Positions 513 through 55,135 of a DNA stretch of 64,000 nt are shown in pieces. How positions within the stretch are numbered: the stretch's first letter is position 1; each line of letters opens with the position of its first letter. The stretch is from Auanema rhodensis (Eukaryota; Animalia; Nematoda): contig OZ059894.1 in the NCBI GenBank assembly GCA_964057225.1, positions 10,912,001-10,976,000 on the forward strand, given 5' to 3'. Position numbers and translations under genes: made by a program. Below the pieces are notes generated by a model, which had not been told where the DNA came from, ran no database searches, and saw nothing but the letters and a program-made list of their open reading frames with translations.

Positions 513-608
513 TCGTATGCTGCAGCATCGTCATAAGCGTCACTCAAGTTGAATTTCCATGTGTACTACACGATTTTCATTCTTATTGTTACATTCTTTC
601 CCTGAGGG

Positions 609-756
609 AATGGGCCGTTCCCGCCAGCAGTGCAAGAGCGGGTCGACCCGTGAGGTGGAGCTAGCAAGCCAGCATCTACCTCAAGTCTCAAAAATCGGTT
701 AACCTTATTGTGAACCAATGGAACACATATCGAAGGTTAATTCGATAAGAACGATT
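609..756 (-). ncRNA. U2: U2 snRNA 3' part (nt 39 to ~186), gene interrupted by an insertion
   Basis: Reverse complement of 46379-46526; contains Sm site GATTTTTGA and the stem-loop IV loop TTGCACT. Confidence 0.95.
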
Positions 757-1662
757 TATTGAAGTAGGAAATGTTTTGCCCCGTAGGACTACAAGTAAAT
801 ATTATCTAGCACAAGGCTATTAGAGAATGATAAGATACTACCTGCACTAAGTGCGTCGCATCGTAAAGGGAAAAAAAATTAAACAATGGGAGTTTAACAG
901 CATGAAATTGAGAGAAAAGACATATCCGAGTGTGAATAAAATTACGGGTGAACGGAACATGGAGTACGAGAGACATACAAAACGAGACTAAGTGAAAAGA
1001 AAAAGTCTTGTATCACGTTCATGAAGGTTCGACGGATCCGGTAAGAAGCTGCGGGTTCAGAAGGTCAGCTTTCATCTCGTAGTCGTGGCGCATCAGGAAT
1101 TTGTGAAGCTTTCCGGCTTTGCAGACGGCTGTATTGGTCCTCGTAGGATGGTGGAAGATGTTGTCGCTTAGTGATGTTACACATAAAGATATGCAAAAAT
1201 AGAACAATTCAAAGAAAAAGAGCACAATTAAAACGAGATTTGGAGAGAAGAGAAGTCTTATATCACTTTCGATGGTTCGGAAGCTCCAGTCTGCTGCTGC
1301 GGTTTAGGGGGTGCAACTGGCATGTCGGAGGCGTAGCACATCATAGGTCAAGCTTGCTGGACTCCCGGCTCGGCTGGTGGCTGTGAGTTTTCCTTGTGCT
1401 TGTTCTCGGTGGTGGTCCCTGGGCTGTCTCTTCACCAAAAATTACTATACTAATTGCACATTTCATTTAAACGACCCATTTCAGAAGCTTTAAGAGGAAA
1501 AGCTACAATTAGCATAGGACCGCCTCAAGGCCTGGTGGATCATTCAATTTAGTTTCAATCGCCAAGTATAGCGGCCTGGGCCCTTGGGTCAATTCACTGA
1601 ACCAGTGTAGTATCGATTGTTCAATGGAACACATATCGAAGGTTAATTCGATAAGAACGATT
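757..1662 (-). mobile_element. Non-autonomous U2-targeting retroelement (SINE/SIDE-like), ~865 bp body plus U2-derived leader
   Basis: Inserted at U2 nt 38/39; no RT ORF; 3' terminus TTGTAGTC..CGGG..AACATT..CTAC.TCAATAA matches the family B 3' terminus; 5' end carries U2 nt 39-79. Confidence 0.8.
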
Positions 1663-1700
1663 ACTACACTTTGATCTTAGCCAAAAGGCCGAGAAGCGAT
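1622..1700 (-). ncRNA. U2: U2 snRNA 5' part (nt 1-79)
   Basis: ATCGCTTCTCGGCCTTTTGGCTAAGATCAAAGTGTAGTA... on the minus strand; upstream flank near-identical to the other U2 loci. Confidence 0.95.
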
Positions 1701-2142
1701 ACAGCATAGCCATGAGTATCAAAGACATCAAGCAAATGTATCGTACTTGTTACGAGTGCACTCTCTCATTTGAATATAAAAGTGTGGTTTGACAATCTTG
1801 ACTGTACAGGTCATAAATGGCTCATATAAACTGTGGATTTACTCAACTTTTGGACTTATTTTTTTCTTATTCGAAGCGCTGCACTTTTTTCTATTCTTTT
1901 TATTCAAATACTTGTATATAGTTTTATATGTACGGTTGCAAAGTTTCCGAATATTTTATATATTTTTATACAATAATTAGGAGAAGGTTAATACAATGAA
2001 ATCTCCCAACTTTACAGTGTTTGTATTGCTTACAGTATCTAGAACAACCACTCTTGTAATATTAGAGAACATATCAATCAACAACTTTTTCTAGTTATCA
2101 AAGCTTTTTTATTTCTTCAAGATATTTCAAATAAAATATAAA

Positions 2143-2252: not shown

Positions 2253-2653
2253 TTTGGGTTTTTAATGTTCCCAATGACGAGCGTCTATACTCGGTTGTTC
2301 CCCGGTTAATGGGGATAATATGAGTTAGTGGCGAATCCAAACAGTTAGTTAAATGAGAAAGGTTTATTATAAGATCGGTATAAGTTCAGTGGTAGAATTA
2401 AATTAAGAGTGAGAGTGAAGGTTTCTTGGGCTTTATATATGATTTAGCTTGAAGGTGATATTTGATATTTGAATACAAAGGTCAGGTCAATGTAAACTAT
2501 AGAGGTGATAAAAGTTCAATATCCTTTAAGAATGTTGCGCAAGAGGTTAATGATACAATTACAAGGTTATTAGACAATGGTTTAGAGTTTTAGAAGAGTT
2601 ATGTTTCTAGGTTAAATTATTGTATTTCATTTCTAGTCAGGCATTCGCCGACA
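2253..2653 (-). repeat. 3' LTR of BEL element 1
   Basis: Direct repeat of 9193-9593; preceded by CGCCCGGCAA where BEL elements have their polypurine tract. Confidence 0.95.
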
Positions 2654-4625
2654 TTGCCGGGCGAGGGTTGCGGTTTGAGTTTCTCACACAGCAATAAGAG
2701 AGTATAGCAGGAAGAAGTAATGATGTAAGGAATGGGGCTGCTATGTATAATAAGTATGAACCTGCAGTGATTGCAGCTACGGCAGGTACTATCCATTTCC
2801 AATTATCATGGATGACGTCGAAAAGCGGTTCCAAATTCGGGAGATTCCATGATAGTCCGGATGTTCCATTATGTAGTTTGATCGATTCTTCTGAAAAAAT
2901 GGTAGTGTCGCTTATGTAGTGTAGTCTGGTACTTTGCTGTATAATTTGTTTTGTTGCTCGTCCGCAAGTCAGAGTACAGTTTTCTTGTACTTTGGGTTCA
3001 TTGAAATATAGTTTGACCGTTGTGGCGGGATTTTGGTCAGAGCATCGTATTGTAGTAGAAAAGGAGTCGTGAAGGGGATTGAATGAAATTTCTTCGTTGG
3101 TTATTTTTGTGCAATTGTGTAAATCGTCGCAAAAGAATTCTATGTGTTTGTGCGCGTTGGGGGATCCACAAGCTTGCGCTTGGCATGTGAGATAAAAGAT
3201 TGCGAATAAGAGAGAAGGGATGTACGAAATTGTGTGCTGTTGGCGGTGTGTTTTTAATTTTTTATAGATTAGACCCCCGATAATGCAAAAAAGAGCGCAG
3301 CCTATTATTGGAGTAAGAGCTATCAAAATAGCTAAGAAAGGGTTACAATGTGGGTTGCCTATTATATGCAATAACGCAGGTGGAGGAAAATCGCAGGGGT
3401 GGGGGAGATGACAAATCTGAGTTTGCCGCCTATCTTTGTCGTAGCGAGTAACTGCTGTAGTTTTTGGAATTACAGACACTTGAAGTTGAATATCTTTTGA
3501 TTGGTTGGCTGGTAAATCATGACAGTCCCCATTAATACAAAATGTCGATGGTTTTGTTTGTGCGGGAAATAGTATATGAGAGTATGAGCAGGTGAATAAT
3601 GGCTCAGCTGTGGCGACAAAAAATAGTTGTATTAATAATAAGAATTTCATGATATTAGTCAAAAAATTCGTATTCGTATGCCTTGTGTTTGGGTGTGTTG
3701 AATAGGTGGCATGGTTAATATGTGCGGTTTTTCGCTGAGTTTCTGTGAATTCATCAAAAAGTTCTAAAGGGTATAATCGCTCTACTGGTTTTATCAATAT
3801 CTTACCGCTACCTGTTTTTATCTTGGCGGTCCGAACTACTTTGTCTGAAGAAGGAATTAGTTCGATTACCCTAGCCATATTCCAATTGTTTCTATTTGTA
3901 TGGTCCTCTTCTACAAGTACTATTTCGTTGTGATATGGGTGTCGCAAGTTATGGTGCCCCATTTTCCTTGATGCATGTGCATGCCTTAAAGTAAGAAGAT
4001 ATTCGTGTGACCATGTGTTCCAGAATGCTTCGGCTATTATTTCGATTTTCTGTAAATTTTCAAACGCTTGTTTGTTGCTTGCGATCGTGTTGGGTAGGTC
4101 GAGTCTGTCACCTAAACTGTCTACATTATCACCTGGTATGAGTATGGGGGAGCCATGAGTTAAAAAATCTGCTGGCGTTAGTGGATTCTCGTGAAAATTC
4201 TCGGAATCTGTATACGTGATGGGCCGTGAGTTCATGATTCCTTCTATTTTAATTATTGCTGTAACTAGTTGGTCTTTTTCTATTAACTTAAGTGATAGTG
4301 TTTTCACAAGTGCATTCTTTGTAATAGCAACTAATCTCTCCCAAACCCCACCAGTCCAGGGAGCGCTGGGAGTGTTGAATATCCATGTGATATTGTGATT
4401 TTGTATATAGTTGATAAAATTAGTCTGGTGTTCCCTACTATGTTCCTCTAATGTGTGAAGTATTTTGGCCGCATGAGTGAAATTGGCCCCGTTGTCTGAT
4501 CGTAGAACATGCGGTAAACCTCTCCGCGCTACAAATCGAATGAAGGCATTGATAAAAGAGTTCGAACTCATGTCATTAATTGGTTCTAAATGGACGGCTC
4601 TAATAGTAAGGCAGGTGAATATCAC
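2637..4625 (-). CDS. BEL1 integrase core/C-terminus plus internally deleted phlebovirus-like envelope (frameshifted continuation of the polyprotein)
   Basis: FTCLTIRAVHLE, RFVARRG, SDNGANF, PWTGGVWERLV; then signal peptide, Cys-rich segment and TM helices; stop codon lies inside the LTR. Confidence 0.9.
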   Translation of the reverse strand: MIFTCLTIRAVHLEPINDMSSNSFINAFIRFVARRGLPHVLRSDNGANFTHAAKILHTLEEHSREHQTNFINYIQNHNITWIFNTPSAPWTGGVWERLVAITKNALVKTLSLKLIEKDQLVTAIIKIEGIMNSRPITYTDSENFHENPLTPADFLTHGSPILIPGDNVDSLGDRLDLPNTIASNKQAFENLQKIEIIAEAFWNTWSHEYLLTLRHAHASRKMGHHNLRHPYHNEIVLVEEDHTNRNNWNMARVIELIPSSDKVVRTAKIKTGSGKILIKPVERLYPLELFDEFTETQRKTAHINHATYSTHPNTRHTNTNFLTNIMKFLLLIQLFFVATAEPLFTCSYSHILFPAQTKPSTFCINGDCHDLPANQSKDIQLQVSVIPKTTAVTRYDKDRRQTQICHLPHPCDFPPPALLHIIGNPHCNPFLAILIALTPIIGCALFCIIGGLIYKKLKTHRQQHTISYIPSLLFAIFYLTCQAQACGSPNAHKHIEFFCDDLHNCTKITNEEISFNPLHDSFSTTIRCSDQNPATTVKLYFNEPKVQENCTLTCGRATKQIIQQSTRLHYISDTTIFSEESIKLHNGTSGLSWNLPNLEPLFDVIHDNWKWIVPAVAAITAGSYLLYIAAPFLTSLLLPAILSYCCVRNSNRNPRPAMSANA

Positions 4626-7600
4626 AACGTATATGCTGATTTTTTCTGAATTTTATGGGACCTATGCAATCAAGGCCTGTATGTCTAAATGGCATAGCTC
4701 TCGTCACTCTGTCCTCCGGTAACGGGGCAAAGCATTCTATTGAAAATGGGTTACTTAGAGTCTTTTGACATGGCACACATCTTTTTATTATTGATTTGCA
4801 TACTTGTCTAGCCGCTGTCATGAAGAACCTTGTCATAAAGAGGTACAGTAATTGGCTAACTCCGGCATGACCATTCGTCCTGTGTAGGAACATAAGAATG
4901 AGTTTACCTAAAGTAGATTTTTTGGGAAGAAGATATGGAAACTTAGTTTTTGTTGGAAGTGATGAATTGGTGAACCGAGTCTGTATGCAGATTAGTCCAT
5001 TCCCATCCTGTTTTAATCGAAATTGTTTTTTATATGAATTTGAAAGATGAGTCTGAGCTTCTTTTATAAGCAGTATCTCAGCGGTTGTGTTAATAAACTG
5101 GGATACTTGCCATTCTGTTGTTGCTGCTTTTAATAAATATGATGTTGGCGTTTTGTTGCGTTTGCCTAAAAAATACAGTGCGGCTTTTAAAACTAATCCA
5201 GCGATTCTGCGTAACTTGAAGTATGAGCTGAAGCGGCTGGGATCTAAAAGATTGTCTAATACAGGATTGTTTGTGGTGACTGGTAGTATAAGCATTGAAG
5301 GTTCTTCTTCTTCTAAAGGTGCTCTGAATTCCTTTGCTGGTTTATCGTTCTTATTTAATAGCCACTCAGGAGAAAAAAGCCATTTGTCCTTAAGAAGGGC
5401 AATATCAGTGGTGCCTCTAGTGCCTATGTCTGCCGGATTATGATCCGTGTCCACGTAGTGATACGTTATATTGGCTCCTTTTAGCTCTAATTTTCTTGCA
5501 ATTTGGTCAGTATTCTGGCGTAAATTGCTTACGAACACAGGTATATTCTTTTTAGTGAACAGCCAAGATAAAGCTATCTGGCTGTCGGAAGCGATGTTGA
5601 TGGAGACCTCATGTGTTGGTAAATTGTTGTATATGGTTTCGGCCATTTTCATACCCATGAGAATCGCAGACATTTCCAAACGTGGAATTGTCAATGTTCT
5701 GTTTTTTGGAGCTAATTTAATCTTACCCATGACCAGGGGACTCCGTGTTGTAGGTGATGTGCAGAAGGCACATGCAGCAATAGCTAGTACACTAGCGTCT
5801 ACAAATATCCAAATCTCTCGGCATTCTGATGTATCTGTCAGCTTTCGTGGAATCTGAATCGTAGCTGTTCCTATTTTATTACTCACTGTATTCCAGCTAT
5901 TGACCACATCGCTTGGCACTTGTTCTTTCCAGTCTATAGACCCATTCATTACTTGGCGTAGTAGTAGTTTGAAATGCAGTAAAAGGGGAGCCGCTACTCC
6001 TAAAGGGTCGTAAACACTGTGAAGACTGCTGAGTAGATCTCGTTTTGTGAATGAGTTCTGAGTGCGTAGTTGACAGTTTATCGAAAAAATGTCTTTATCT
6101 GAATAATGTTTAATGCCTAATATTTTTGGGTTCAGATCTGGATGTTTATCCTTGTCTGGTACGGTTGAGTTGAAGTTGGTGTAGTTGCTATAATACTCTC
6201 TTATGTTCATAGATATTCGAGAAAAAATCTGCTTAGATTCTTCATATATGCTATGTAAATCTTCTGAACTGTTTGTCGTGTAGAAGATATTGTCCACATA
6301 TAGGTACCGTAGGGTTTCCGGAACTAAGTGCGACTCTAGGCTTTGCAAGAATGCGTAGAGTGACATATTCAGTATGGACGGACTGTCTGTTATGCCAAAC
6401 GCCAGTCGGTTAAATCTTAATTCTAAAATGTTATCTGGAGTGGTACCTTTGTGAGGATCGCGTAACCAGAGAAAGCGGCAGAGATCTTTATGATCATTAG
6501 TTATCCTTATTTGGGTGAAGGCACCCTCAATATCGCACATGAGGAAGTACTTTTTGATCCGTATCCCTATCAGAATATCTATGATTTTATTGTTAAAACT
6601 TTCACCTGTTTCCGTAACATCATTTAATGAGAGTTGGCCTTTTTGCTTTGCTGAAGCGTTAAACACAACCCTCAGCGGTTTGCTCTTGTTGGGCTTCCAT
6701 ACCCCTCTATGCGGCATGTAGTAGAGCAAAGAGTTCTCTGAAGTAAGAGGAACTTGTTCCACCACACCTTCCTCTATATATCGCATAATGGTTTGATGAT
6801 AGTGTTGTAGCTGGTTATGTTCCTCTTTGAGAGATTTCTGTAATCTGTTTAGAGTGGCTAATGCCATGCTTCGATTGGATTGAATTTTTGTGGCGTTTGA
6901 TTTAAGAGGTAAGGGAGCCATAACAAAACCCTTGTCGAATTTTATTAGCGAAGTATATTCATTGAAGAATAGCTCCGATCGGTTCAAGGCTCCTTCGTGT
7001 GGAGAAATTCCTAAGTTATCTATTTCAAAAAGTTGTTTAATCATAACGTCTTCTGGTATCACAGGGTTAACAATAAGTGTATTTATGGCTGCGATATTAT
7101 CGTTCGGTATTTGCTTACCGTAAATACAGGGTCCAATCTGGGTATGTTTGACTTTCAATCCCGATGGAAGTATAGTAGGTTTGGTATCATGTATGATTGT
7201 ATCACACCAATCCATACCTAGCAAAATATCGGGAATGAATAATTCACCATCCACCAATTGGTTAGTAATGGTTATATTAGATTGTTCTAGAGCTTCTTTG
7301 TCTTTTAGAGAAAGTTGACAGCTCTTTAGTTTTCCTGTGAGAGGTTTGGGTGAGGTGAGGAGCGTAAGTATGATATTTTTTCCAAATGGAGTTCTTAAAC
7401 TTGCTTCGACCGTTAAAGAATTAAATGCCTCACAGCTCCCGGAGAAACCGGTTGCTGTGATTAATTGGGAATTTAAAGTTTTGAGCTGGCATTCTTTGGC
7501 TGCCGGCTCGTAAATGAAGCTTTGAGTTGCTCCAGGGTCGAAAAACAATATTTTGGTGTGGAACTTACCTGTATGGGGGTTAAAAATTGATACTTTAGAA

Positions 7601-8946
7601 GTCATAAGATATGCGGGCGAAGGTGGAGTGTGAGTTGATTGCGAAATAGAGCAATTGATACCCATGGTTGCTTTTTTATTAGATGATTTTGATGAAGCAG
7701 GAGGGAGACAAAGAGATGGGTGATGATCTCTATTACATATTTTACATTTATCAAAGGTACACTTAGTGCTAGTGTGTGTAGGACTGAAACAAATCCAGCA
7801 CCTGTTTTTTTGTTTTATTATGTCTCTCCTCTGTTGAGGATTATGTATGGTTAAACATTTTGCGGATCGATGTCCGTTTTGGTCACAAAATACGCATGGG
7901 CGTTCGGTTTTCGTAACAGTTGTAATATGTGAGTTATGTTTCAAGGGAGAAATTGAATTAGTTTGAGCATGGTATTGCGGGATAAAAGGAGATTTAGAAG
8001 AATAAATTGAAAAATTTTCCATTGAGTCGGCCGTTTCCTCAATGTTTCTTAGTAGTTGTTTTATAGAGGTTGCCCTAGATGATCTCCAACAGAGCATATT
8101 GATGATATCAATAGGAAATTTAGTTGTGATAAGTTTGACCCAAACGGGGTCTTCAGAATTATAAAGTGTATCAGTCTCAAGCTGATCAAGAAGTGCTCTG
8201 ATTTCATTCACGCGAGATCTAACTGACATGGGGTCATTTTTTGCAGGAGGTAATTTCACCAGTTCATCATGAATACGGTAATCAACTTTTAGTTTTGGTG
8301 CGTAAGTGGTTTTAAGAGTAGATATAATACGTTCATACGCAGTGCCATCTAATGGTTTATTTTCAAGATGAACTCGTGCTGAACCTTTAAGAGCTTCAGC
8401 TAAATAAATGCTTTTTTGCCTATTATTGAGGTCAGGGTCTTGGTGAATGAGCGTTTTAAATTGTCTCCAAAATGTCGGAAAGGTTTTGTTATCTCCATTG
8501 AATGTGGGTATGGAAAGTTGAGGTGGTTTCAAAAGTAATTTGCTAATGTTCGTTTTCGAAATGCGCGGTGATGTAAAAAGGGTTGTATGCGGTGCGGTAA
8601 GTGCTAGTTCGGTCTCATCGTCTGAGTCCGGGATCGAGTGTGCGCCAGCAACTTTAGTTTCGAGCTCAAACAGTTTTTTGTTTGCTCTTTCTATAGTTGC
8701 GGCATGTTGGTTTGTTAAATTATTTATACGATTATTAAATTCCAAAAGAAAAGGGTCTATTTGAAGTGAAGCTATGGTAGCTAAATTGGATTCGTGAAAG
8801 CGAAGCTGTTCAAGAGTGTTGTTAATGTCGGAAAAAAGAGAGAATTGTTCCTCACTTTGTTTGTTTTCCAAAAGGCTCTCTAGTTTTTCAAAAGTTTGAA
8901 CGAAACTTTGGAATTTTGTATTAAAAACCGTTTCGATACGGTCCAT
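4600..8946 (-). CDS. BEL1 Gag-protease-RT-RNase H-integrase N-terminus
   Basis: Three CCHC knuckles (CVFC..H..C, CWIC..H..C, CKIC..H..C), FDPGATQSFI protease, CDIEGAF and YVDN RT, VDAS/IPRLE/NPAD RNase H, HHCC. Confidence 0.95.
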   Translation of the reverse strand: MDRIETVFNTKFQSFVQTFEKLESLLENKQSEEQFSLFSDINNTLEQLRFHESNLATIASLQIDPFLLEFNNRINNLTNQHAATIERANKKLFELETKVAGAHSIPDSDDETELALTAPHTTLFTSPRISKTNISKLLLKPPQLSIPTFNGDNKTFPTFWRQFKTLIHQDPDLNNRQKSIYLAEALKGSARVHLENKPLDGTAYERIISTLKTTYAPKLKVDYRIHDELVKLPPAKNDPMSVRSRVNEIRALLDQLETDTLYNSEDPVWVKLITTKFPIDIINMLCWRSSRATSIKQLLRNIEETADSMENFSIYSSKSPFIPQYHAQTNSISPLKHNSHITTVTKTERPCVFCDQNGHRSAKCLTIHNPQQRRDIIKQKNRCWICFSPTHTSTKCTFDKCKICNRDHHPSLCLPPASSKSSNKKATMGINCSISQSTHTPPSPAYLMTSKVSIFNPHTGKFHTKILFFDPGATQSFIYEPAAKECQLKTLNSQLITATGFSGSCEAFNSLTVEASLRTPFGKNIILTLLTSPKPLTGKLKSCQLSLKDKEALEQSNITITNQLVDGELFIPDILLGMDWCDTIIHDTKPTILPSGLKVKHTQIGPCIYGKQIPNDNIAAINTLIVNPVIPEDVMIKQLFEIDNLGISPHEGALNRSELFFNEYTSLIKFDKGFVMAPLPLKSNATKIQSNRSMALATLNRLQKSLKEEHNQLQHYHQTIMRYIEEGVVEQVPLTSENSLLYYMPHRGVWKPNKSKPLRVVFNASAKQKGQLSLNDVTETGESFNNKIIDILIGIRIKKYFLMCDIEGAFTQIRITNDHKDLCRFLWLRDPHKGTTPDNILELRFNRLAFGITDSPSILNMSLYAFLQSLESHLVPETLRYLYVDNIFYTTNSSEDLHSIYEESKQIFSRISMNIREYYSNYTNFNSTVPDKDKHPDLNPKILGIKHYSDKDIFSINCQLRTQNSFTKRDLLSSLHSVYDPLGVAAPLLLHFKLLLRQVMNGSIDWKEQVPSDVVNSWNTVSNKIGTATIQIPRKLTDTSECREIWIFVDASVLAIAACAFCTSPTTRSPLVMGKIKLAPKNRTLTIPRLEMSAILMGMKMAETIYNNLPTHEVSINIASDSQIALSWLFTKKNIPVFVSNLRQNTDQIARKLELKGANITYHYVDTDHNPADIGTRGTTDIALLKDKWLFSPEWLLNKNDKPAKEFRAPLEEEEPSMLILPVTTNNPVLDNLLDPSRFSSYFKLRRIAGLVLKAALYFLGKRNKTPTSYLLKAATTEWQVSQFINTTAEILLIKEAQTHLSNSYKKQFRLKQDGNGLICIQTRFTNSSLPTKTKFPYLLPKKSTLGKLILMFLHRTNGHAGVSQLLYLFMTRFFMTAARQVCKSIIKRCVPCQKTLSNPFSIECFAPLPEDRVTRAMPFRHTGLDCIGPIKFRKNQHIRCDIHLPYY

Positions 8947-9192: not shown

Positions 9193-9593
9193 TTTGGGTT
9201 TTTAATGTTCCCAATGACGAGCGTCTATACTCGGTTGTTCCCCGGTTAATGGGGATAATATGAGTTAGTGGCGAATCCAAACAGTTAGTTAAATGAGAAA
9301 GGTTTATTATAAGATCGGTATAAGTTCAGTGGTAGAATTAAATTAAGAGTGAGAGTGAAGGTTTCTTGGGCTTTATATATGATTTAGCTTGAAGGTGATA
9401 TTTGATATTTGAATACAAAGGTCAGGTCAATGTAAACTATAGAGGTGATAAAAGTTCAATATCCTTTAAGAATGTTGCGCAAGAGGTTAATGATACAATT
9501 ACAAGGTTATTAGACAATGGTTTAGAGTTTTAGAAGAGTTATGTTTCTAGGTTAAATTATTGTATTTCATTTCTAGTCAGGCATTCGCCGACA
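9193..9593 (-). repeat. 5' LTR of BEL element 1
   Basis: Direct repeat of 2253-2653, starts TGTCGGCG. Confidence 0.95.
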
Positions 9594-23429: not shown

Positions 23430-23808
23430 AATGGTTTATTGAATAACTAATGTTATGATACAATAAATAACCAATAAAAAAGAGCCCAGAATCGGGGAGA
23501 CGGTATTACCAGTACAACTTAAAACAGCAAGTAATTAAAAAGTACATAATAAGACACATTGCCAACAGAGGCTAAAACGACTCAAGAGTCGGGGGAGTGG
23601 GTTAAAAAAAATGAACAAAAAAATGAATATTAAAGCAGAACAATGAGAAATCAAGTGCCGCTATGATCAAACAATTTGAGTGCCTACGGCAATGATGTTA
23701 AAAATAAACAACAAAATACATGTACCAATGAAGGTCAGAAAGAAAGAAACAAAAGACAAAAATAAGTAATACAAAAAGTAAATACATTACAATCAAATCA
23801 CAAACAAG

Positions 23809-26800
23809 TCAATTGATAATTTCTTCTTCATATTGCCTTACACCAGAAACATGTTCCACGTAGATATTCCTGGCCCACTTGATGGTATCGGCGACGACGA
23901 GCTTCTCCATTAGCCGGTTGTAGTGGCTGCTGATCTTGAGTGATCGGAGGGCTTGTCCGTTGAGCGGGTCCATAGTTCCAAGCATTCCTACGACATATGC
24001 TTCTACACTAGTCTTATAACCAAGACATTGGTATTGGCTGGCTATGTCAGCATATTTCCTCTCCTTTATCATACGCGCGGCTATCATGGCTTGACGGCGG
24101 TTTTCATAGCTCACTGTAACATCAACGATACTACAGTGTTTTGCGTCATGATCGACCACTACTATGTCAGGTCGGAGTGTACTATTAATGCCAGGAAGAG
24201 GCTGGTTAGTGTAAACTTCTCCGTTTTTAGGCTCTGGCAGGGCTTTGATAAGACGGTCCACGATGTTGTTGTGGCGGAGTTGGATTGCTCTCGTGTGAGA
24301 GTGGCAGTGTCCAAGAACATGTGCAGCAGTTTCGTTGGAGTAACTACACCTGCGGCACTGTTTGTTTCCTTCTCCGTGTCTTCTACAGCCATTGAGCTGG
24401 AGAGTATTGAGTCGAGCCTTGTGGATGAATCGCCAATCAGCAAACCGTATGAAATCTCCCTTCGCCATAAAGTGATTGGACGCTTTGTTGAGCATTGTGA
24501 CATCAAAGACTTTCCCTTGATCCGGTTTTTGAAGAAGGATCCGAAGGTCTTTCAGCCATAATGCACGTCGCAGGCTTCTGTGGCATAGTGAAGGTGTTAA
24601 CAGTTGGTTGTTTAGATTGAGTTCTAAACCACTTTCGAGGCATGTCCAGTTAGCGTTGATGAGTTTCTTGAGTTGACGCATCGCTACTCTTACTCTAGTC
24701 CAGATGGAGGAAACATCAGATGTTTCGGTGTCGAAAATGCCATCAACGGAACCGTTGTAATATGCAGCTGTCTCATCGTTACTGGCTTGACGTTTAATCC
24801 TTTTTGATGCTACTTTTTTTGAGTCTTGATGCGCAATATCAGCTACTACAAGATCAGATGACTTCAAAAGTTGGTAGGCATGAGTGACTTCACAGACGTC
24901 TGACAGGTGTTGGAGTCGAGAGAGACCAAGTCCGCCGTAGTTAGTTGGCAGGTAGATTGGTTCAGCACTGGCGTTTGGAGGATAGTGCATCCATCTACGG
25001 GCACAGCGTTTGAGTTCTTTGTCAAAGGCGACTAGTTTACTCTTTGGGACGTGGCCATTCGTCATATGAAAATTAAGGCAGGGCATCAGGAAGGTGCGTA
25101 CTGCGTCAGCTTTCTGCCATTCAGCAAGTAAGGATTTGTCAATTTTTTCCAAGTGTTGACTCATAATATTCACTGTTGGAACCGCAGACTTATGTAAATG
25201 CATTCCAGTAGGGATTCCCAGGTGGGAGTAGCTGTCGAATTTGCTGAGAGCGGGTAGAGAGGAGCTCTGTAGCATGTATGAGGCTGTTGATATTTTCCCT
25301 TTGTCGATCGTCAAGGTGGCGCATTTCGCTGGTTTGAAGGTCAAGCCTGTGAAATTAGCCGCATTTGATGCTGCGTCCAACATTTTCTGTAGATCTTCTG
25401 ATGATGAGGAGACCAGGGCAAGGTCATCGGCGTACGCTAGCACAGCGATGTTGTGGTTGTGTAGCTTATAGCCAGTAGAGGATTCCAAGATGGTTTTAAT
25501 TAGAGGTTCAATGGCAAGGTTGAACAGGATCGGAGATAGTGGGGATCCTTGTAACACACCTGCATGAACTGGAATGGTCGATGTGAGTCCGGAGCCTGTC
25601 TGGATTCTTGTAGAGGCATCTGTGTATAGAGCTCGTACTCGGGATATTGAGGCTTCAGCCACTCCTGACCATCTTAGAACGTCTAGCAGAGTTTCGTGTG
25701 GCAGCGATCCAAAAGCGTTTGCGAGATCAAGCCAAGCAATTGCAATTTTCTCACGTTTACGTTTAGCGTCCGCAATGGTACTTTGCAACATAAAGTTGTG
25801 TTCCATGCATCCAGCTTTGGCCACAAAGCCCTTTTGGGAGGGAGAAAGTCTTTTTTCTGCTCTTGCCCATGTTAGCAGTCGATGCGTAAGACAAGCTGAG
25901 TACGTCTTACCAATTGTGCACGAAAGTGCTATTGGTCGCCAGTTGTTAATGTCAGCTTTATCACCTTTCTTATGGATGAGGACGGTGGTCGACTCTTTCC
26001 AGGAAAAAGGGATGTGTCCTAGCTTGTGTACGGTGTTAAATATCGCTGCTAATATGTGACCTCCTTGGTCAAATTTCTTCCAGTGCGAGTATCGAAGTCC
26101 ATCAGCTCCTGGAGCCGTATCGCTGCAACGTCGTATGCGTTCCCAGACTTCCAAAGGGGTGAAAACACCTTCTAATGGGTCGGTACTAGCTGGCAAATCC
26201 GGTCTGGTGACTGTGATGGGGAGGGCTGGGCCTTGACTGCTGTGAACAGAAAGGAAATGTTTTTCAACCTCTGCAGATGGTATGGTGCAGGTTTCACTTT
26301 GTTCTCCGAGCAGTTGTCGAAAGGCTTTCTTCTTGTTGGCCCTCCAGAGCTTCTGGAGCTTCATCGCCTGGGTTTTTTGGTCTTCCTCAGGTTGTGTGTG
26401 TGGTCGGCGCCTTTGTCGGAAGTTGGGAACTTTGATCATAATGTCAAGAGACTTTCTGATTGCGTCTACCAACTCTTCCAGGACCTGCTCGAGCTCACTT
26501 TTGCACACAACCTTTTTAATTCTATCCACCCAAGTATTTTCAGAGTTTCTATTCGGATCAGGGTCGGCAAAAAATGGTTCTGTACTCGAAACCCTGATCT
26601 CGTTGAATATTTCACTCTCTCGCGGAAGGGGGGAAACTTCGGCCTCTGGGGACAAGTCCAGAATTGGGGCCTCAAACAAGCGTACCGTTGATGGAGATCC
26701 TTGTTCCTGTCCACTGGATGATGTTTCCTCCATTGTACGCTCCTCCACGGGCGGGGTGGTCGTCCTTGTGCCTGGTGGGCGGGTGTTCCTGATCCTCCGC

Positions 26801-27087
26801 AATATAGGGCGGGAACTGGGCTCTCTCGGAGATAGAGGTGAGATCACCACAGTTTCCTCTATGATGCGGAGGCATCCTTCAGCTTTTTTCTGATGGCTTT
26901 TAACGGCCTTCAGATTGCTGGTGAGGCCACAGGCACGGCACTCAAATTCTACTCCGACCTCATGTTCTCTCCGAAGATGGCGGACGAGACCATTGTGGTC
27001 TGAGTAGGATCGCGGAATAGGAGCGCAGATTGAACAAGAAAAAGGGCTCTGAAGAGGCACCTTTAGCTTGTAAAGCCCTTGCTCCAT
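23809..27087 (-). CDS. Family A protein: two N-terminal zinc fingers, RT, CCHC knuckle, PD-(D/E)xK endonuclease (1092 aa, intact)
   Basis: CSIC..H..H, APGADG, NWRPI, WLDLANAFGS, GVLQGSPLSP, YADD, CRRC..ETAAHVLGHC, RHNNIV, RPDIV..DVTV..KERKY. Confidence 0.95.
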   Translation of the reverse strand: MEQGLYKLKVPLQSPFSCSICAPIPRSYSDHNGLVRHLRREHEVGVEFECRACGLTSNLKAVKSHQKKAEGCLRIIEETVVISPLSPREPSSRPILRRIRNTRPPGTRTTTPPVEERTMEETSSSGQEQGSPSTVRLFEAPILDLSPEAEVSPLPRESEIFNEIRVSSTEPFFADPDPNRNSENTWVDRIKKVVCKSELEQVLEELVDAIRKSLDIMIKVPNFRQRRRPHTQPEEDQKTQAMKLQKLWRANKKKAFRQLLGEQSETCTIPSAEVEKHFLSVHSSQGPALPITVTRPDLPASTDPLEGVFTPLEVWERIRRCSDTAPGADGLRYSHWKKFDQGGHILAAIFNTVHKLGHIPFSWKESTTVLIHKKGDKADINNWRPIALSCTIGKTYSACLTHRLLTWARAEKRLSPSQKGFVAKAGCMEHNFMLQSTIADAKRKREKIAIAWLDLANAFGSLPHETLLDVLRWSGVAEASISRVRALYTDASTRIQTGSGLTSTIPVHAGVLQGSPLSPILFNLAIEPLIKTILESSTGYKLHNHNIAVLAYADDLALVSSSSEDLQKMLDAASNAANFTGLTFKPAKCATLTIDKGKISTASYMLQSSSLPALSKFDSYSHLGIPTGMHLHKSAVPTVNIMSQHLEKIDKSLLAEWQKADAVRTFLMPCLNFHMTNGHVPKSKLVAFDKELKRCARRWMHYPPNASAEPIYLPTNYGGLGLSRLQHLSDVCEVTHAYQLLKSSDLVVADIAHQDSKKVASKRIKRQASNDETAAYYNGSVDGIFDTETSDVSSIWTRVRVAMRQLKKLINANWTCLESGLELNLNNQLLTPSLCHRSLRRALWLKDLRILLQKPDQGKVFDVTMLNKASNHFMAKGDFIRFADWRFIHKARLNTLQLNGCRRHGEGNKQCRRCSYSNETAAHVLGHCHSHTRAIQLRHNNIVDRLIKALPEPKNGEVYTNQPLPGINSTLRPDIVVVDHDAKHCSIVDVTVSYENRRQAMIAARMIKERKYADIASQYQCLGYKTSVEAYVVGMLGTMDPLNGQALRSLKISSHYNRLMEKLVVADTIKWARNIYVEHVSGVRQYEEEIIN

Positions 27088-27139
27088 CTCTAGCAGATCT
27101 AAAGACTTACGTAGTACAGTTGCAATATCGATTTAGCCA

Positions 27140-29183: not shown

Positions 29184-29203
29184 CCAAAAGGCCGAGAAGC
29201 GAT
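29184..29203 (-). ncRNA. U2: U2 nt 1-20 remnant (nt 21 to ~38 lost at the 5' junction)
   Basis: ATCGCTTCTCGGCCTTTTGG with intact upstream flank. Confidence 0.9.
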
Positions 29204-45779: not shown

Positions 45780-45898
45780 GCTTACGACCATACCACGTTG
45801 AAAGTACGCCATCCCGTCCGATCTGGCAAGTCAAGCAACGTTGGGCCCGGTTAGTACTTGGATCGGAGACGGCTTGGGAATCCCGGGTGTCGTAAGCT
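45780..45898 (+). rRNA. 5S rRNA: 5S rRNA, intact
   Basis: Nematode-type 5S sequence with terminal stem GCTTACGAC/GTCGTAAGC and oligo-T terminator. Confidence 0.97.
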
Positions 45899-46340
45899 TT
45901 TATATTTTATTTGAAATATCTTGAAGAAATAAAAAAGCTTTGATAACTAGAAAAAGTTGTTGATTGATATGTGCTCTAATATTACAAGAGTGGTTGTTCT
46001 AGATACTGTAAGCAATACAAACACTGTAAAGTTGGGAGATTTCATTGTATTAACCTTCTCCTAATTATTGTATAAAAATATATAAAATATTCGGAAACTT
46101 TGCAACCGTACATATAAAACTATATACAAGTATTTGAATAAAAAGAATAGAAAAAAGTGCAGCGCTTCGAATAAGAAAAAAATAAGTCCAAAAGTTGAGT
46201 AAATCCACAGTTTATATGAGCCATTTATGACCTGTACAGTCAAGATTGTCAAACCACACTTTTATATTCAAATGAGAGAGTGCACTCGTAACAAGTACGA
46301 TACATTTGCTTGATGTCTTTGATACTCATGGCTATGCTGT

Positions 46341-46526
46341 ATCGCTTCTCGGCCTTTTGGCTAAGATCAAAGTGTAGTAATCGTTCTTATCGAATTAACC
46401 TTCGATATGTGTTCCATTGGTTCACAATAAGGTTAACCGATTTTTGAGACTTGAGGTAGATGCTGGCTTGCTAGCTCCACCTCACGGGTCGACCCGCTCT
46501 TGCACTGCTGGCGGGAACGGCCCATT
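46341..46526 (+). ncRNA. U2: U2 snRNA, the only uninterrupted copy (3' end approximate)
   Basis: ATCGCTTCTCGGCCTTTTGGCTAAGATCAAAGTGTAGTA, stem IIa, Sm site, stem-loops III and IV. Confidence 0.97.
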
Positions 46527-46537
46527 CCCTCAGGGAA
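46525..46537 (+). terminator. Short hairpin at the U2 3' end (putative 3'-end formation signal)
   Basis: TTCCC-TCA-GGGAA in all four U2 loci. Confidence 0.5.
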
Positions 46538-46622
46538 AGAATGTAACAATAAGAATGAAAATCGTGTAGTACACATGGAAATTCAACTTGAGTGACGCTT
46601 ATGACGATGCTGCAGCATACGA

Positions 46623-46877
46623 ACGGTTTAGAAATGACTATACGATCAAAGATGTACCTCTCATTTGTTCACAAACCTTCTATTTTCATGGCTTTCTTAT
46701 AATTTTTTGTCATACTTATGTACTACCTGGTAATTCTGTATTTACATTTATGTTTATTCATGTCTTTGCTGCCTCTACGCTTTTGTTACTTTTATAGTTT
46801 AATATTGTAGTTTTTCGGAACAAACATTCTCTACGTCAATAAATTGTTCTTATCGAATTAATCTTCAATATGTGTTC
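46623..46877 (+). pseudogene. Fossil family B-like 3' UTR plus decayed U2 fragment in the spacer
   Basis: Reverse complement of 258-512. Confidence 0.85.
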
Positions 46878-48273
46878 TATTACTATACTGGTAATGTATA
46901 TATCTCGTTTAGTGCGTGGGGGCCTATTCGGGTGGTTTCTATTATGCATATGCATGTTGTTTAGACTTTTTAGACGTATTTCAACAAGTTAGAACGATTA
47001 AACATGTTTGCAGAGTGATCGGATGAGGTTGAAACGAGTAATGAGAAAAAAAGTAGGTAAGGGGGGACCCTTGTGTGAGAAAATGTTCAAAAAAAAGTTG
47101 TTTTTGTTTTCGTTTTGTTTTCATTTTTCAAAAATTTACAGTTTTTATAAAAATAATTCTTCTTTCTACAGTAGATTGTAAATTTCATGAAAAAAAATAT
47201 AGGGAATCAAAAGTTACATTAGGGTCCCGAATACGGGACATTTTTATATGTGTAAAAACGGTCCAGTTTTAACACAAGGGTTTTCCGGTCTATTATAAGG
47301 TAAAACACAGCTTTTTAAACCTCCGTAGCGTAATGAGAAATGATGATTTCGTGAATGTTAAAGTTTTCTATCATAGTTCTCTATAGTATCTACGTACATA
47401 TGAAGAAAAAATAGAAAGAAATTTTTCTGGAAGCAAGTTTCATTGAGCGTTCCGTATAAGGAACATTATGATAAAAATTATAAGGGGGTAAAACATATCA
47501 TTGTTAACCAAGACGTCTGAAAATAAAATTTTCTATTACAATAAATATGAAGTTCTATCATACATATGCATGTTATAAAGACTTTCAAGACGTATTTCAA
47601 CGGGTTAGAACGAGTTTAAACCGAGTTATGAGGAAAAACAATGATATTTAAAAAAGTAAGTAAGGAGGTAGGGGGGACCCTTATGTTAAAGAATGTTAAA
47701 AAAAAAGAATTGTTCCAATTGCTCTAAAAATGTAATATTTGTGTCCAGCATGTTGGAAAAACTAAAAACGTAGTTTGAGATGATTCCAACATGATGGTTC
47801 TTTTAACTGGTAACATGTATCCAAATGGATACATGGTAAAACATTTTTCAGAGAAGTAAGTAAGTACAAAATTGATGAAAAAAAAATTTTAAAAGAATCA
47901 ATATTGATGGAAACTTGTTATATATGATCACGAATTGCGAATTAAAAAAGTTATGAGCAAAAACAGTGATTGTTAGATGTGAAAAAAAAGTTGAAAAAGA
48001 ATTCTTCCAATCAATTTAATTTTATTATTTTTGTGTTTAACATGTGTGAGCACCGATACAACTATGTGTTGAAAAAATTTCTCTCTTGATTGGACTTTTT
48101 ACTGTTGATATATATATATATATATATAAACGGATACATGGCTAACCTTTAGACACATAGGTGAAAAAAAATTTTTTTTTGTTATTGTTACTGTTCCTGT
48201 TGTTTTCTTTGTGGTCGTATCTATTAACAACAAGATTTAGAGTGATATAACTGATAATGAAGAATATGACATT

Positions 48274-49536: not shown

Positions 49537-49684
49537 AATGGGCCGTTCCCGCCAGCAGTGCAAGAGCGGGTCGACCCGTGAGGTGGAGCTAGCAAGCCAG
49601 CATCTACCTCAAGTCTCAAAAATCGGTTAACCTTATTGTGAACCAATGGAACACATATCGAAGGTTAATTCGATAAGAACGATT
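49537..49684 (-). ncRNA. U2: U2 snRNA 3' part (nt 39 to ~186), interrupted
   Basis: Same sequence as 609-756. Confidence 0.95.
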
Positions 49685-50195
49685 TATTGACGTAGAGAAT
49701 GTTGGTCCCGAGAGACTACAATATTAAACTATAAAAGTAACAGAAGCCCAAAGGCAGCGAGAACATAAAGAAATATCGAGGTATTTACAGAGTTACCAGA
49801 TAGTATGTGTACATGATCAAAGTATAACAAAGACATGAGGAAATAAAGATTTGTGAACAAATGAGAAATACAGTTTTGGTCATGTGGTCACTTTTGAATC
49901 GATTTAGTTCTATATTGCTATAGATTTTTAGAGACAGCAGAATATTACAATATTGATTCGAAAGTGACCTGCAACTCTAACTAGTATATGAACAATTTGA
50001 AAAGAACAATAGTAGATAGCAGAAAACAAACAAAGCATAGGTAATTATAAATACATTTAATCACTTAATATTTGATAGTTGTCAGGTTTAACAGGTAAAG
50101 GTTGAGGTTGGGGTTGATAAAAGAAGCTAAACAGATAATGAAAAACCTAGCAACTATTGAGATATTAACAACATAATACATAAAGAAGAAATTGG

Positions 50196-53100
50196 TTAAT
50201 TTTCTTGCTGAGATTGTGAAGGCTTGGAGAATTGGCGGTTTCCGGATACATGTTCCACGTAGATATCGCGAGCCCAGCGGATAACGTCGCTGACAATGAG
50301 TTTCTCCATCAAATGGTTGTATCGTCGGCCAATTCCTAGCGAAGCGAGTGCTTTTCCGTTCAAAGGATCCATGGTACCAAGAGCTCCAACCACGTAGGCT
50401 TCCAGTGATGTCTTGTATCCCTTTTCTTCCAGCTTTTTCTTCAATTCAGCATACTTCGTTTCTTTGTCCAGTCTTGCTTTAGCTAACGCCAAACTCCGGT
50501 TTTCATAGCTTACAACTACATCTACTATGGAACAAGTCATATGCTTGTCATTGATTATTGCTATGTCCGGACGAAGCGATGTCATACCAGGTATTTGTTG
50601 GTTGATATAGATTTTAGCGTCTTTAGGCTTCTTGGCAGCTTTCACTAGACGATTCATGATTTCATTATGCCTTAGTTGGACAGCTTCTGAATGAGCATTA
50701 CAGCGTCCAAAAACGTGTGCAGCTGATTCATTCTGATATCCACATCTACGACATCTTCGGTCTCCATCTCCGTGGCGGCGACATCCGTTAAGTTGAAGCA
50801 CGTTGAGCCGGGCTTTGTGGATGAATCTCCAATCGGCAAACCTGATGAAGTCACCACGAGCCAGATAGTGATTAGATGAGTTCCGGATAATAGATGTTTC
50901 AAAGACTCGTCCTTGATCTGGTTTTTCACGAAGTGAACGAATTTCTTCACTCCAAAGAGCTTGTCGAAGTGCCTTCTTAACGAACCGAGGATTGAGTGGT
51001 CGGTTGTCAAGTTGCAATCCTTAAGCAGCTTCTTCAGTGATGTTCCAGTTGATGTTAATGGAGGATTTTAGACGTCTTGTTGCGGCCCTTACTCTAGTCC
51101 AAGTTGATGAAACGTCAGCAGTATAGGTATCAAAAATTCCTTCAATGCTTCCGTTGTAATATTCAGTGATGTTCTGAGTTGTTGGTGCTGCTTTAATCCT
51201 AGATTGAACTGCGTGCACCGCATCAGAGTACGCAATCGACTGAACTAGCGGGTCCTTGGAATTTAGGATCATTTGGGCGTGGGCTAGCTGACAGCAGTCA
51301 CTGAGCTTCTGGAGCTTTGTGAAACCAAGTCCACCGTGAGTGGTGGGGATGTAGAGTGGTTCCGCACTTGCTCGTTGGGGCAGATGAAGCCATTGACGGC
51401 CGCATCTACTAAGGTGTTGATCGAAGCTTACTAGTTTGTCCTTGCTGACTTTTCCGTTAGTCATATGAAAGTCCATACAGGGGAGAATAAACTGTCTTAC
51501 TGCGTCCGCTTTTTGCCAGTCAGTTAGTTTAGACTCGTGGATCTTTCTGAGATCTTGATTCATCTTGATCATGATGTCGTCGGCGGTGTACTGTAGATGC
51601 ATTCCAGTAGGTACTCCTAAGTGACTGTATGCATCGTACTTGTCGAGAGAAGGCATGACTTCGCCTTGAATGATGAAGTTGGTGGTGGTAATTTTTCCTT
51701 GGTTGAACATCAAACTAGCGCATTTGGGAGGTTTGAACTTGAGTCCTAGGTTGGAAGCAGAGGCGGATGTTACTTCGAGCGCTTTTTGAAGGTCAGACTC
51801 CGAGTTGCTTATGAGCACTAGGTCATCAGCATAGGCGAGAACTCGAATGTTTGAGTCGTGAAGCTTGTATCCTTCAGTAGAATGTTCAATTGCTTTAATC
51901 AAGGGTTCGATGGCTAGATTGAAGAGTATCGGAGAGATAGGCGAACCCTGTAGCACTCCAGCTTCGATCTTGATTGGTTCCGTGTTAATTGATCCAGCGG
52001 AAACTATAGTAGAAGCACCCCTATAAGTTTCCAGAATCCGAGAAACAGCAATAGGTCCGAGTCCTGACCAGCGTAGCGAGCATTCTAAAGATGAATGCGG
52101 AAGGGATCCGAAGGCATTAGCAAGATCAAGCCATGCTATGGCAATCTTTTTACGGTTCCTTCTGGCGTCTGCTATTGCTGATTGGAGGATGTAATTGTGC
52201 TCCGTGCATCCCGGTGCTGAGATGAAGCCTTTTTGAGCAGGTGAAATTCTTTTTTCGGCCACTGTCCAACGGTGAAGTCTTAAAGTTATACAGGCTGAGT
52301 ACAGCTTTCCAATGGTGTTTCCGAGGGAGATAGGTCTCCAATTGGTGACCTCAGCTTTATCTCCTTTTTTGTGTAGAAGTACCGTCTTTGAGATCTTCCA
52401 GCCGTCTGGCACGTACGACAAGTCGTGTACCAAGTTGAAGATTCTAGACAGTACATGTCCATGCTTGTCCATTTTCCTCCAGTGGGAGTATCGTATACGA
52501 TCGTTCCCTGGAGCAGTGTCGCTACACTTTTTCAGATGCTTCCATATTTCCTTCGGAGTGAAGGCGCCTTCAAGGGGCTCATCAGATGAGCAGGCTTCAG
52601 GCTGAAGCGTCGGCATTTCCATACTGTGTGAGCTAGAAGCATGCACAGTGCTGAAGTGAGCAGTCAGGGTAGACTTGTCGATGGTACAAGCTTCATATGG
52701 AAGATTCAAGACGTTCCTATAGGCCTTCTTCTTATTAGCTCTCCAGAGCTTCTGAATCTTCATTGCTTTTATCTTGTCCAATTCGGGAGACTCTATTTCC
52801 GCTCGACCTCTGTTGCCACTAGTTCTGTGAAGAGGTCGCGACGCTGGAGGAAGGGTACTCTGAATCTCCGATGTTATCACCTGCAGAGCATGTTCAAAGT
52901 CAACTGAATCAATTACTCGATTCAGAATTCTAATCCACGCTAATTGGGTGTCGGACATATCGATGGAATTACCCGGCGTACGATCTTCTAATATAGGACG
53001 CCCAGAGTCGCTCGCCGTATCCCTTACGGGTGTTGCGGGTGCGGTCGCGGGGACGCGGGAACCAATCGATTCTGGTACAAGGTCCATTTCCTGTGGCACC

Positions 53101-53471
53101 ATGTCGCTCCGATCGATTGACTGATCGGGGAGCGTCATTTCCGGTGAAGGAGAATGACGGGCCATTCGGATGCGTAGGACTCTTGCAGGCGTGCTAGGGG
53201 AAACAGAAGAGGCAAGTGTGCGTGCAACAGACGAACAAGGCTCATTATCTCTAATGTGCTTGTTTATAAATTTTAAGTCACGTACTATGCTACATCCTCT
53301 GCATCCAAATTCCATGTTCATTTTGTGCTCAATTCTTAGATGTTTGGAGAGCGCCGCGTGGTTGCCATAACTTCTTGGGATCGGTAGGCAGGCTTCACAG
53401 TTGAATGGGGCTTGAAGAGGGACCATTAAAACCTGAGATGCGCCACCTTCGATGACTCTTCTCACGGGCAT
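50196..53471 (-). pseudogene. Family B ZF-RT-CCHC-RLE ORF with one in-frame TAA at 51021-51023
   Basis: ORFs 51021-53483 and 50196-51017 are in the same frame; WLDLANAFGS, YADD, CRRC..HVFGRC, RPDIA. Confidence 0.9.
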
Positions 53472-53622
53472 TATGAAATACAAGGAATATAAATATGGTA
53501 AGTTGAAAAAAAATTAGTTAAAACATTAACTTATATTACCAGCAACTTTGTAGTTTGATCGCTTCTCCCAGAGATGGTCAGTACGTAGTTTGAACTTGCT
53601 CTGGTGTCTCAAATAACTCGTC

Positions 53623-55097: not shown

Positions 55098-55135
55098 ACT
55101 ACACTTTGATCTTAGCCAAAAGGCCGAGAAGCGAT
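55098..55135 (-). ncRNA. U2: U2 nt 1-38 remnant
   Basis: ATCGCTTCTC...AAGTGTAGT with upstream flank. Confidence 0.92.

Follow-up and report, generated by a model that had tools for sequence, protein, structure and literature searches.

A non-coding element lodged in a U2 snRNA gene of the nematode Auanema rhodensis carries, in the most constrained of its modules, a tract antisense to the 5′ domain of the U2 RNA that stands directly upstream of it, and this tract, borne by a dependent element, is real and conserved. The explanation that we favour, with about even confidence, is that the element (EL) sits at the insertion site of the Utopia retroelements and that its antisense head is a selected, cis-acting 5′ clamp.

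The window—the whole 64,000-nucleotide stretch of DNA analysed here—is part of an array of tandem 5S-U2 units carried by contig C1 of the 181-Mb genome; an intact array unit lies at 45780-46902 (forward strand), with U2 at 46341-46530. On the reverse strand, positions 1700 to 1622 read as U2 nt 1-79 (the ‘leader’; Rfam U2 match 1583-1700, 100% identity to intact U2 at 46341-46419), and directly behind this leader, as the original prediction held, comes EL, an 865-bp non-coding, non-autonomous insert (757-1621, reverse strand) with no further copy within the window. U2 then resumes as nt 39-190 (605-756, reverse strand), the sequence at 716-756 duplicating the 41 bp (U2 nt 39-79) of 1622-1662. 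On the promoter side, the U2 5′ flank is unaltered as far as the adjacent 5S gene (1701-2142, reverse strand), and 1622-2252 shares 99.8% identity with the corresponding stretch (46419-45789) of the intact 5S-U2 unit. Because both flanks are 99.8–100% identical to the intact unit, the region upstream of U2 and the 3′ flank have been left untouched. Downstream of Utopia elements, U2 begins at nt 39 (PMC4640811), so its resumption at nt 39 after EL identifies this as an insertion at the Utopia site; the nt 39 3′ junction was found at EL and at the other copies.

Genome-wide, EL occurs 12 times, in near-identical copies that are confined to the C1 5S-U2 array and share one junction type. Four of them stand in tandem (G000:C1:11633705-11637287) with a 906-bp period (865 + 41), the 41-bp U2 nt 39-79 piece lying between neighbours, and thus resemble the tandem arrays of R1, in which a target-site duplication separates the units. 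Some copies lie behind the tail of another element, and, judging from the sequences, array duplication without fresh retrotransposition could explain the copy number of EL. F2 is a sister group (F2a, F2b and F2c; ~740–790 bp, 35 copies) that occupies the same site and has the same leader end as EL.

The assignment of EL to the non-autonomous elements in the original prediction held up, as no ORF is longer than 71 aa. Within that coding capacity there is no reverse transcriptase, C-terminal zinc finger or restriction-like endonuclease; a stretch resembling, by eye, the C-terminus of an ORF is part of a 68-aa ORF; and an Rfam scan of 700-1760 at E ≤ 10 returned only U2 and one chance sRNA match. 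Since EL encodes neither reverse transcriptase nor restriction-like endonuclease (RLE), whereas its neighbours encode RVT_1 and a C-terminus resembling CCHC/RLE, it can at most be a dependant of the Utopia family. The two local families are U-A (23433-27139, reverse strand; leader to U2 nt 96; a 1092-aa ORF that contains RVT_1 and ends in a CCHC/RLE-like region) and U-B (49685-53622, reverse strand; RVT_1; leader to U2 nt 89; one in-frame stop, at codon 821), the proteins of which share 50% identity. Three 5′-truncated copies of U-A join U2 variably, two of them at nt 20 and nt 38 (29184-29203, with an 18-bp target deletion, and 55098-55135, respectively; both without duplication) and one after nt 87, which is the kind of 5′ joining described for R2. 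A U2 piece carried within the RNA that is copied would account for the constant leader end of each full-length family better than would a staggered cut at a fixed position.

Identity among EL, F2a, F2b and F2c is 85–99% over the head (~100 nt), 65–90% over the tail (~130 nt) and 32–57% over the body, which, in sequence terms, is how the head, body and tail of SIDE-like dependants compare. No module of EL is better conserved than the head, and a search with a sequence model found 47 heads in the genome, all of them in the C1 array and of only four variants. The 3′ tail module of EL (757-890, reverse strand) is 65–67% identical to the F2 tails; over its last 38 nt it matches the 3′ terminus of the U-B copy (49685-49721), the match beyond 38 nt being non-significant, and the F2 tails are ~80% identical to the last 80 nt of U-B. 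The EL and F2 tails thus resemble the 3′ end of U-B, not that of U-A, and by this resemblance U-B is the likely partner of EL and F2.

Several other features of the array were noted. The sequence at 254-511 is a fossil, consisting of a fragment of U2 nt 39-80 and ~200 nt of a U-B-like Utopia tail, downstream of intact U2; it recurs in every array unit, is 79% identical to 49645-49901 and is an old insertion turned into part of the repeat unit. BEL/Pao LTR elements are also present in the window. The 5S gene beside the EL site (2143-2256) scores low (82 bits) and ends at the point, 2252, beyond which other units are no longer homologous; it is followed by a BEL/Pao LTR retrotransposon, the ORFs of which (2637-8946) encode Peptidase_A17, reverse transcriptase and integrase domains, 2253-2300 is repeated at 9193-9240 and looks like the BEL/Pao LTR, and the 5S gene appears to be interrupted. 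Elsewhere in the genome, G000:C3:6.74-7.10 Mb contains dense tandem arrays of full-length SL1-like matches at 252- and 504-bp spacing, scoring 54–62 bits, under the Rfam cut-off of 75.

The antisense blocks named in the original prediction lie where it put them: on the forward strand, ATCGC is at 1558-1562, CGGCCT at 1572-1577, TTGG at 1584-1587 and AGTGTAGTA-TCG at 1604-1615. Read in the direction of the element (reverse strand throughout), EL opens with an 11-nt 5′ extension of its own, AACAATCGATA (1611-1621), which lengthens the complementarity to U2 nt 38-46 and is missing from all F2 heads; these begin right after U2 nt 79, with CTATACTGG. There follows UACUACACU (1604-1612), the exact antisense of U2 nt 31-39, the branch-point recognition sequence (BPRS); at this position F2 has CUAUACU, with one pair being G·U. 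The remainder of this first antisense module (1558-1603), with ATCGC, CGGCCT and TTGG, is predicted to form an internal branch and not to pair with the leader. A second antisense module, AUGAUCCACCAGGCCUUGAGGCGGU (1519-1543), is the predicted partner of U2 nt 1-30, and EL and F2 agree at 23 of its 25 positions; in F2, the highest-scoring antisense alignment falls in the second half of the head, equivalent to 1519-1556 (p about 0.001).

As the two halves of the head resemble each other, the head is best described, from its sequence, as a tandem pair of degenerate copies antisense to U2 nt ~43→1 or, equivalently, as a single antisense copy split by an insertion of ~60 nt. Each antisense copy stops opposite U2 nt 1, and none runs on into sequence homologous to the promoter flank, which suggests an RNA-derived origin.

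Chance was assessed with dinucleotide shuffles, comparing the 110-nt head with U2 nt 1-48 in antisense, sense and reversed orientation. The antisense match of the EL head proved greater than expected by chance (shuffle p about 0.01): the longest exact match was 9 (p = 0.0135) and gapped scores gave p = 0.004–0.017, with p = 0.001–0.011 for the F2 head, and the sense and reversed controls were non-significant (p = 0.05–0.53). The EL signal comes mostly from the BPRS block, and the exact 9-mer at 1604-1612 lies partly inside the EL-specific extension; the EL head minus its first 11 nt still gave an antisense p of about 0.02. In sense orientation, the head matched none of the genome’s own U1, U2 and U4 significantly (p = 0.16–0.96), so it is not a sense snRNA head. 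Derivation from another snRNA was considered and rejected, as nothing significant was found with the genome’s own U1 and U4 in either orientation, and a by-eye likeness to U4 was due to chance.

Of the local autonomous families, U-A has no significant antisense-U2 tract by shuffle tests or pairing probability. The 5′ UTR of U-B carries GAGAAGCGAT (53558-53567, reverse strand; shuffle p = 0.011), the exact antisense of U2 nt 1-10, which in the 64-kb window occurs in the same orientation only there and in the intact forward-strand U2; the probability that U2 nt 1-12 are paired is 0.80, a value reached by none of 300 shuffles. The resemblance of the EL head to the U-B 5′ UTR is only a short one. 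At the boundary between the two antisense modules, GCGATTGAAACTAAATTG of EL (1546-1566) resembles GCGATCAAACTACAAAG of U-B (53549-53573). The sequences hint that the EL/F2 head may have descended from a U-B-like 5′ UTR.

Folding was examined on the leader together with the head. The EL chimera (1500-1700, reverse strand) reached −60.4 kcal/mol (z −3.25) and leader plus F2 head −68.8 kcal/mol (z −4.1). Folded apart, the leader and EL head sum to −42.5 kcal/mol, leaving the chimera 18 kcal/mol more stable, and duplex folding of U2 nt 1-48 with the head gave z −3.2 for EL and −3.5 for F2. Pairing of U2 nt 1-43 with the head had a probability of 0.72 in EL against 0.26 in shuffles, none of 300 of which reached that value, and 0.66 against 0.22 in F2 (3/300). 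For U2 nt 31-38 in EL, the probability of pairing with the element was 0.97 against 0.50 in shuffles and for nt 1-12 it was 0.80 against 0.19, each value being reached by 2/300.

RNAalifold found one consensus structure common to EL and F2, in which U2 nt 1-8, 11-15, 19-20 and 24-30 have their partners within 1519-1543, U2 nt 31-37 pair with CUAYACU right behind the leader, and the ~60 nt between the two pairing tracts form a branch with a helix, H2 (1546-1553, the 3′ strand, with 1596-1603; reverse strand). Across the eight pairs of H2, EL and F2 differ by two compensatory double changes and two one-sided changes, with one pair broken, a covariation drawn from only two head lineages. In the minimum free energy fold of EL, 1604-1612 pairs with U2 nt 31-39. 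It had been predicted that a transcript starting at U2 +1 could fold back on itself and bury GUAGUA and the U2 5′ end; in the model such burial is far above shuffles, and the predicted partner of nt 1-30 is 1519-1543, not 1558-1587. If the 1519-1543 tract is blocked, the originally predicted blocks pair instead, at a cost of 13 kcal/mol. What is predicted, overall, is a family-conserved fold that sequesters the U2 5′ domain.

For comparison with other elements, homologues of the U-A protein were taken with their flanks; seven loci (L049, L050, L051, L053, L055, L056 and L057) were left out because no U2 leader was detectable upstream of the ORF. Two loci from the scorpion Centruroides sculpturatus, L047 and L048, have a U2 leader (nt 1-~62), a ~340-nt UTR and an antisense tract just before the ATG, complementary to U2 within nt 17-43 (nt 17-36 in L047; antisense shuffle p = 0.0035 for L047 and 0.05–0.18 for L048). 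Each of the two tandem copies on an unrelated long ENA contig, L052, has the exact 10-mer 27 nt upstream of its ATG (p = 0.0025), with no sense U2 leader adjoining it. L054, an element on a foreign contig that lies in a U1-5S-U2 array and whose leader extends to nt 59, has no significant antisense tract. In five of the seven sets tested, the best of three antisense scores had p ≤ 0.015, and no sense or reversed control fell below 0.05. From these sequence comparisons, the antisense-U2 tract is recurrent, not universal; as U-A and L054 have leaders without a significant tract, it is not required by all Utopia-type elements.

These loci also yielded some incidental observations. L052, a eukaryote contig, repeats (at 2212-2500 and 7930-8218) the order element, U2 nt 41-190, ~80 nt, next element, with no sense U2 5′ leader before each ORF. 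The consensus 5′ splice-site motif GTAAGT occurs in Utopia 5′ UTRs (window ~27105-27113; L048 ~2208-2215 and ~2483-2493; L047 ~2204-2212), and in L048 a polypyrimidine tract and CAG lie immediately upstream of the antisense-U2 tract; by these motifs L048 may have a 5′ UTR intron, the 3′ end of which would abut a perfect U2-binding sequence.

Sequence of EL was found in three runs (Logan contigs of putative RNA origin), queried without U2 nt 1-38, a stretch nearly identical to human U2; the covering contig corresponds to 851-1651 and ends at the repeated U2 piece. We infer that the EL transcript starts at U2 +1. EL RNA would, most likely, be part of a transcript from the U2 promoter and so begin with U2 nt 1-79, and the antisense copy probably arose from reverse-transcribed, U2-led RNA by a template switch or twin priming at the 5′ junction. 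The first ~43 nt of the leader and the head would then come together in a single long helix that is interrupted and bears a side branch showing covariation. Such a helix would act as a stable 5′-terminal clamp, a selected cis-acting RNA structure of the template that may serve 5′-end stability, recognition by the Utopia protein or both, and that would keep target-homologous sequence at the 5′ end of the RNA for joining. Hiding of the U2 branch-site and U6-pairing bases would come with it automatically, perhaps as a secondary benefit. In R2, template function is improved by a thermodynamically stable 5′ fold (PMC11331408), and it is because of this effect and the R2 precedent that we favour a 5′ clamp or recognition structure.

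In the original prediction, the purpose of the tract was masking, that is, neutralisation of a truncated, potentially dominant-negative U2 5′ domain expressed from the U2 promoter. The BPRS and the U2 5′ end, with the regions that pair with the branch site and in U6 helix II, are exactly what is predicted to be paired; however, the abundant autonomous U-A exposes U2 nt 1-96 without significant masking and the L054 leader is likewise unmasked, so exposed U2 leaders are evidently tolerated. The toxicity of such U2 fragments is, moreover, assumed, and L052 has a tract and no adjacent leader. As a primary function, masking therefore seems unlikely to us, and we keep it as a possible secondary benefit only, on account of the unmasked leaders of U-A and L054; toxicity masking is no likelier than a stable 5′ clamp.

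Twin priming and 5′ inversions in L1, together with jumps of reverse transcriptases from one template to snRNAs, provide a plausible source of an inverted, RNA-derived copy ending at the first base of a transcript. The products of L1 twin priming are one-off junction artefacts, whereas the inverted copy in EL and F2 has been inherited, duplicated and conserved. The tract could, all the same, be a functionless relic of an ancestral 5′ junction at which template switching or twin priming inverted a copy of the U2 leader: the copies end at U2 +1 and lack homology to the promoter flank, as expected of an RNA-derived origin, two lineages have no tract, and the R2 reverse transcriptase is known to jump between templates in vivo (PMC3414825). 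Against neutrality, the head is conserved far above the body, 23 of 25 positions at 1519-1543 are shared between families with unalignable bodies, helix H2 covaries, and tracts recur in lineages as distant as a scorpion and the A. rhodensis genome. Given also that the U-A and U-B proteins are merely 50% identical, a neutral untranslated relic ought to have decayed, and we find this account rather improbable.

Another proposal is that the tract supplies the 3′ strand of helix P1 in a self-cleaving ribozyme, HDV-like or other, with the 5′ strand in the U2 leader, so that the co-transcript would be cleaved inside U2. In many R2 elements, upstream 28S sequence and a stretch of the element separated from it by 23 to more than 700 nt together make up P1 (PMC3774820), and R2 SIDEs retain exactly such a 5′ module (PMC3414825). 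The GC-rich core of the EL/F2 head is nearly invariant, and a loose descriptor picked out one HDV-like arrangement in EL (P1, U2 nt 30-35/AUACUU; P3, GGC/GCU; L3, CCAGGCC; P1.1, GG). The same descriptor, however, yields many obvious chance matches, and the candidate is weak, limited to EL and not conserved in F2, where P3 is mismatched; its P2 is just 4 bp and its J4/2 long. There was no match to any ribozyme family, even at E ≤ 10, the complementarity runs to ~37 nt, not ~7, and by inspection the catalytic-core motif of R2, CCTCCTCGTGG (PMC3414825), is absent from the head. A ribozyme here is thus very unlikely. Action in trans, by which the tract would pair with U2 snRNA, whether free or nascent, or with the sense DNA strand of the U2 gene and so guide the element RNP to the target locus or draw it into the traffic of U2 snRNPs, could draw on the two modules of each EL or F2 head (one might act in cis, the other in trans) and on the L052 10-mer, which has no adjacent sense leader and fits a trans or a historical explanation equally well, but wherever a leader is present the cis partner is favoured both kinetically and thermodynamically, making this a highly improbable role.

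Returning to the 5′ clamp, a bolder form of the argument would make the leader/anti-leader helix an obligatory cis element of widespread U2-specific retroelements, from nematodes to arachnids: a host-gene-templated 5′ clamp, or a new ribozyme with U2 as its substrate strand, that is recognised by the Utopia protein and sets the 5′ end of the template. We consider this generalisation doubtful. Site-specific non-LTR elements are under development as gene-insertion tools, and in R2 both the efficiency of the template and the precision of the junctions are known to depend on the 5′ RNA module. If the clamp is real, EL would represent a second, independent solution to the 5′ module, in which the element bears, as a long antisense copy, the complement of the host-gene piece standing at the front of its transcript; it would show how a co-transcript from a pol II snRNA promoter is handled and provide a testable design rule for 5′ modules. 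The question bears, too, on how a genome can live with truncated U2 5′ domains made from dozens of U2 promoters.

Among known systems, the closest in location is Utopia itself (Kojima & Jurka, 2015; PMC4640811), which shares the insertion point and is represented in the same array by RT/CCHC/RLE elements of its lineage; EL, unlike Utopia, encodes nothing. That paper reports neither non-autonomous partners nor ribozymes, and, in a reading not directed at the point, no mention of an antisense-U2 tract in the 5′ UTR was noticed in it. For arthropod Utopia families no target-site duplication is reported, and for those of reptiles one of 20 bp (PMC4640811), whereas here 41–58 bp of U2 are repeated.

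In architecture, EL is closer to the R2 SIDEs and R2/R1 hybrid SIDEs (Eickbush & Eickbush, 2012; PMC3414825), which are likewise short and non-coding, with a conserved, structured 5′ module. The 3′ end of a SIDE is recognised by the protein of the autonomous element, SIDEs are co-transcribed with the host gene, and EL may be like them in these respects; SIDEs also form tandem arrays with a duplicated piece of the target between units, as EL does (PMC3414825). The SIDE 5′ module, however, is a proven HDV-like ribozyme clearly homologous to that of its parent (PMC3414825), whereas the EL head has only a short likeness to the U-B 5′ UTR and would at most be a candidate ribozyme. The R2 HDV-like ribozymes (Eickbush et al., 2013; PMC3774820) share with EL a stretch of element sequence that pairs with upstream host-gene sequence in the co-transcript. 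In R2, this P1 pairing is ~7 bp long and lies beside a conserved catalytic core (PMC3774820); EL differs in having ~37 nt of interrupted complementarity over the whole U2 5′ domain and no recognised core. SINEU elements (Kojima, 2015; PMC4494074), finally, are like EL non-autonomous, with a 5′ part derived from U1 or U2 snRNA, but their heads are sense copies, whereas in EL the sense U2 is the host gene’s own leader and the copy borne by the element is antisense.
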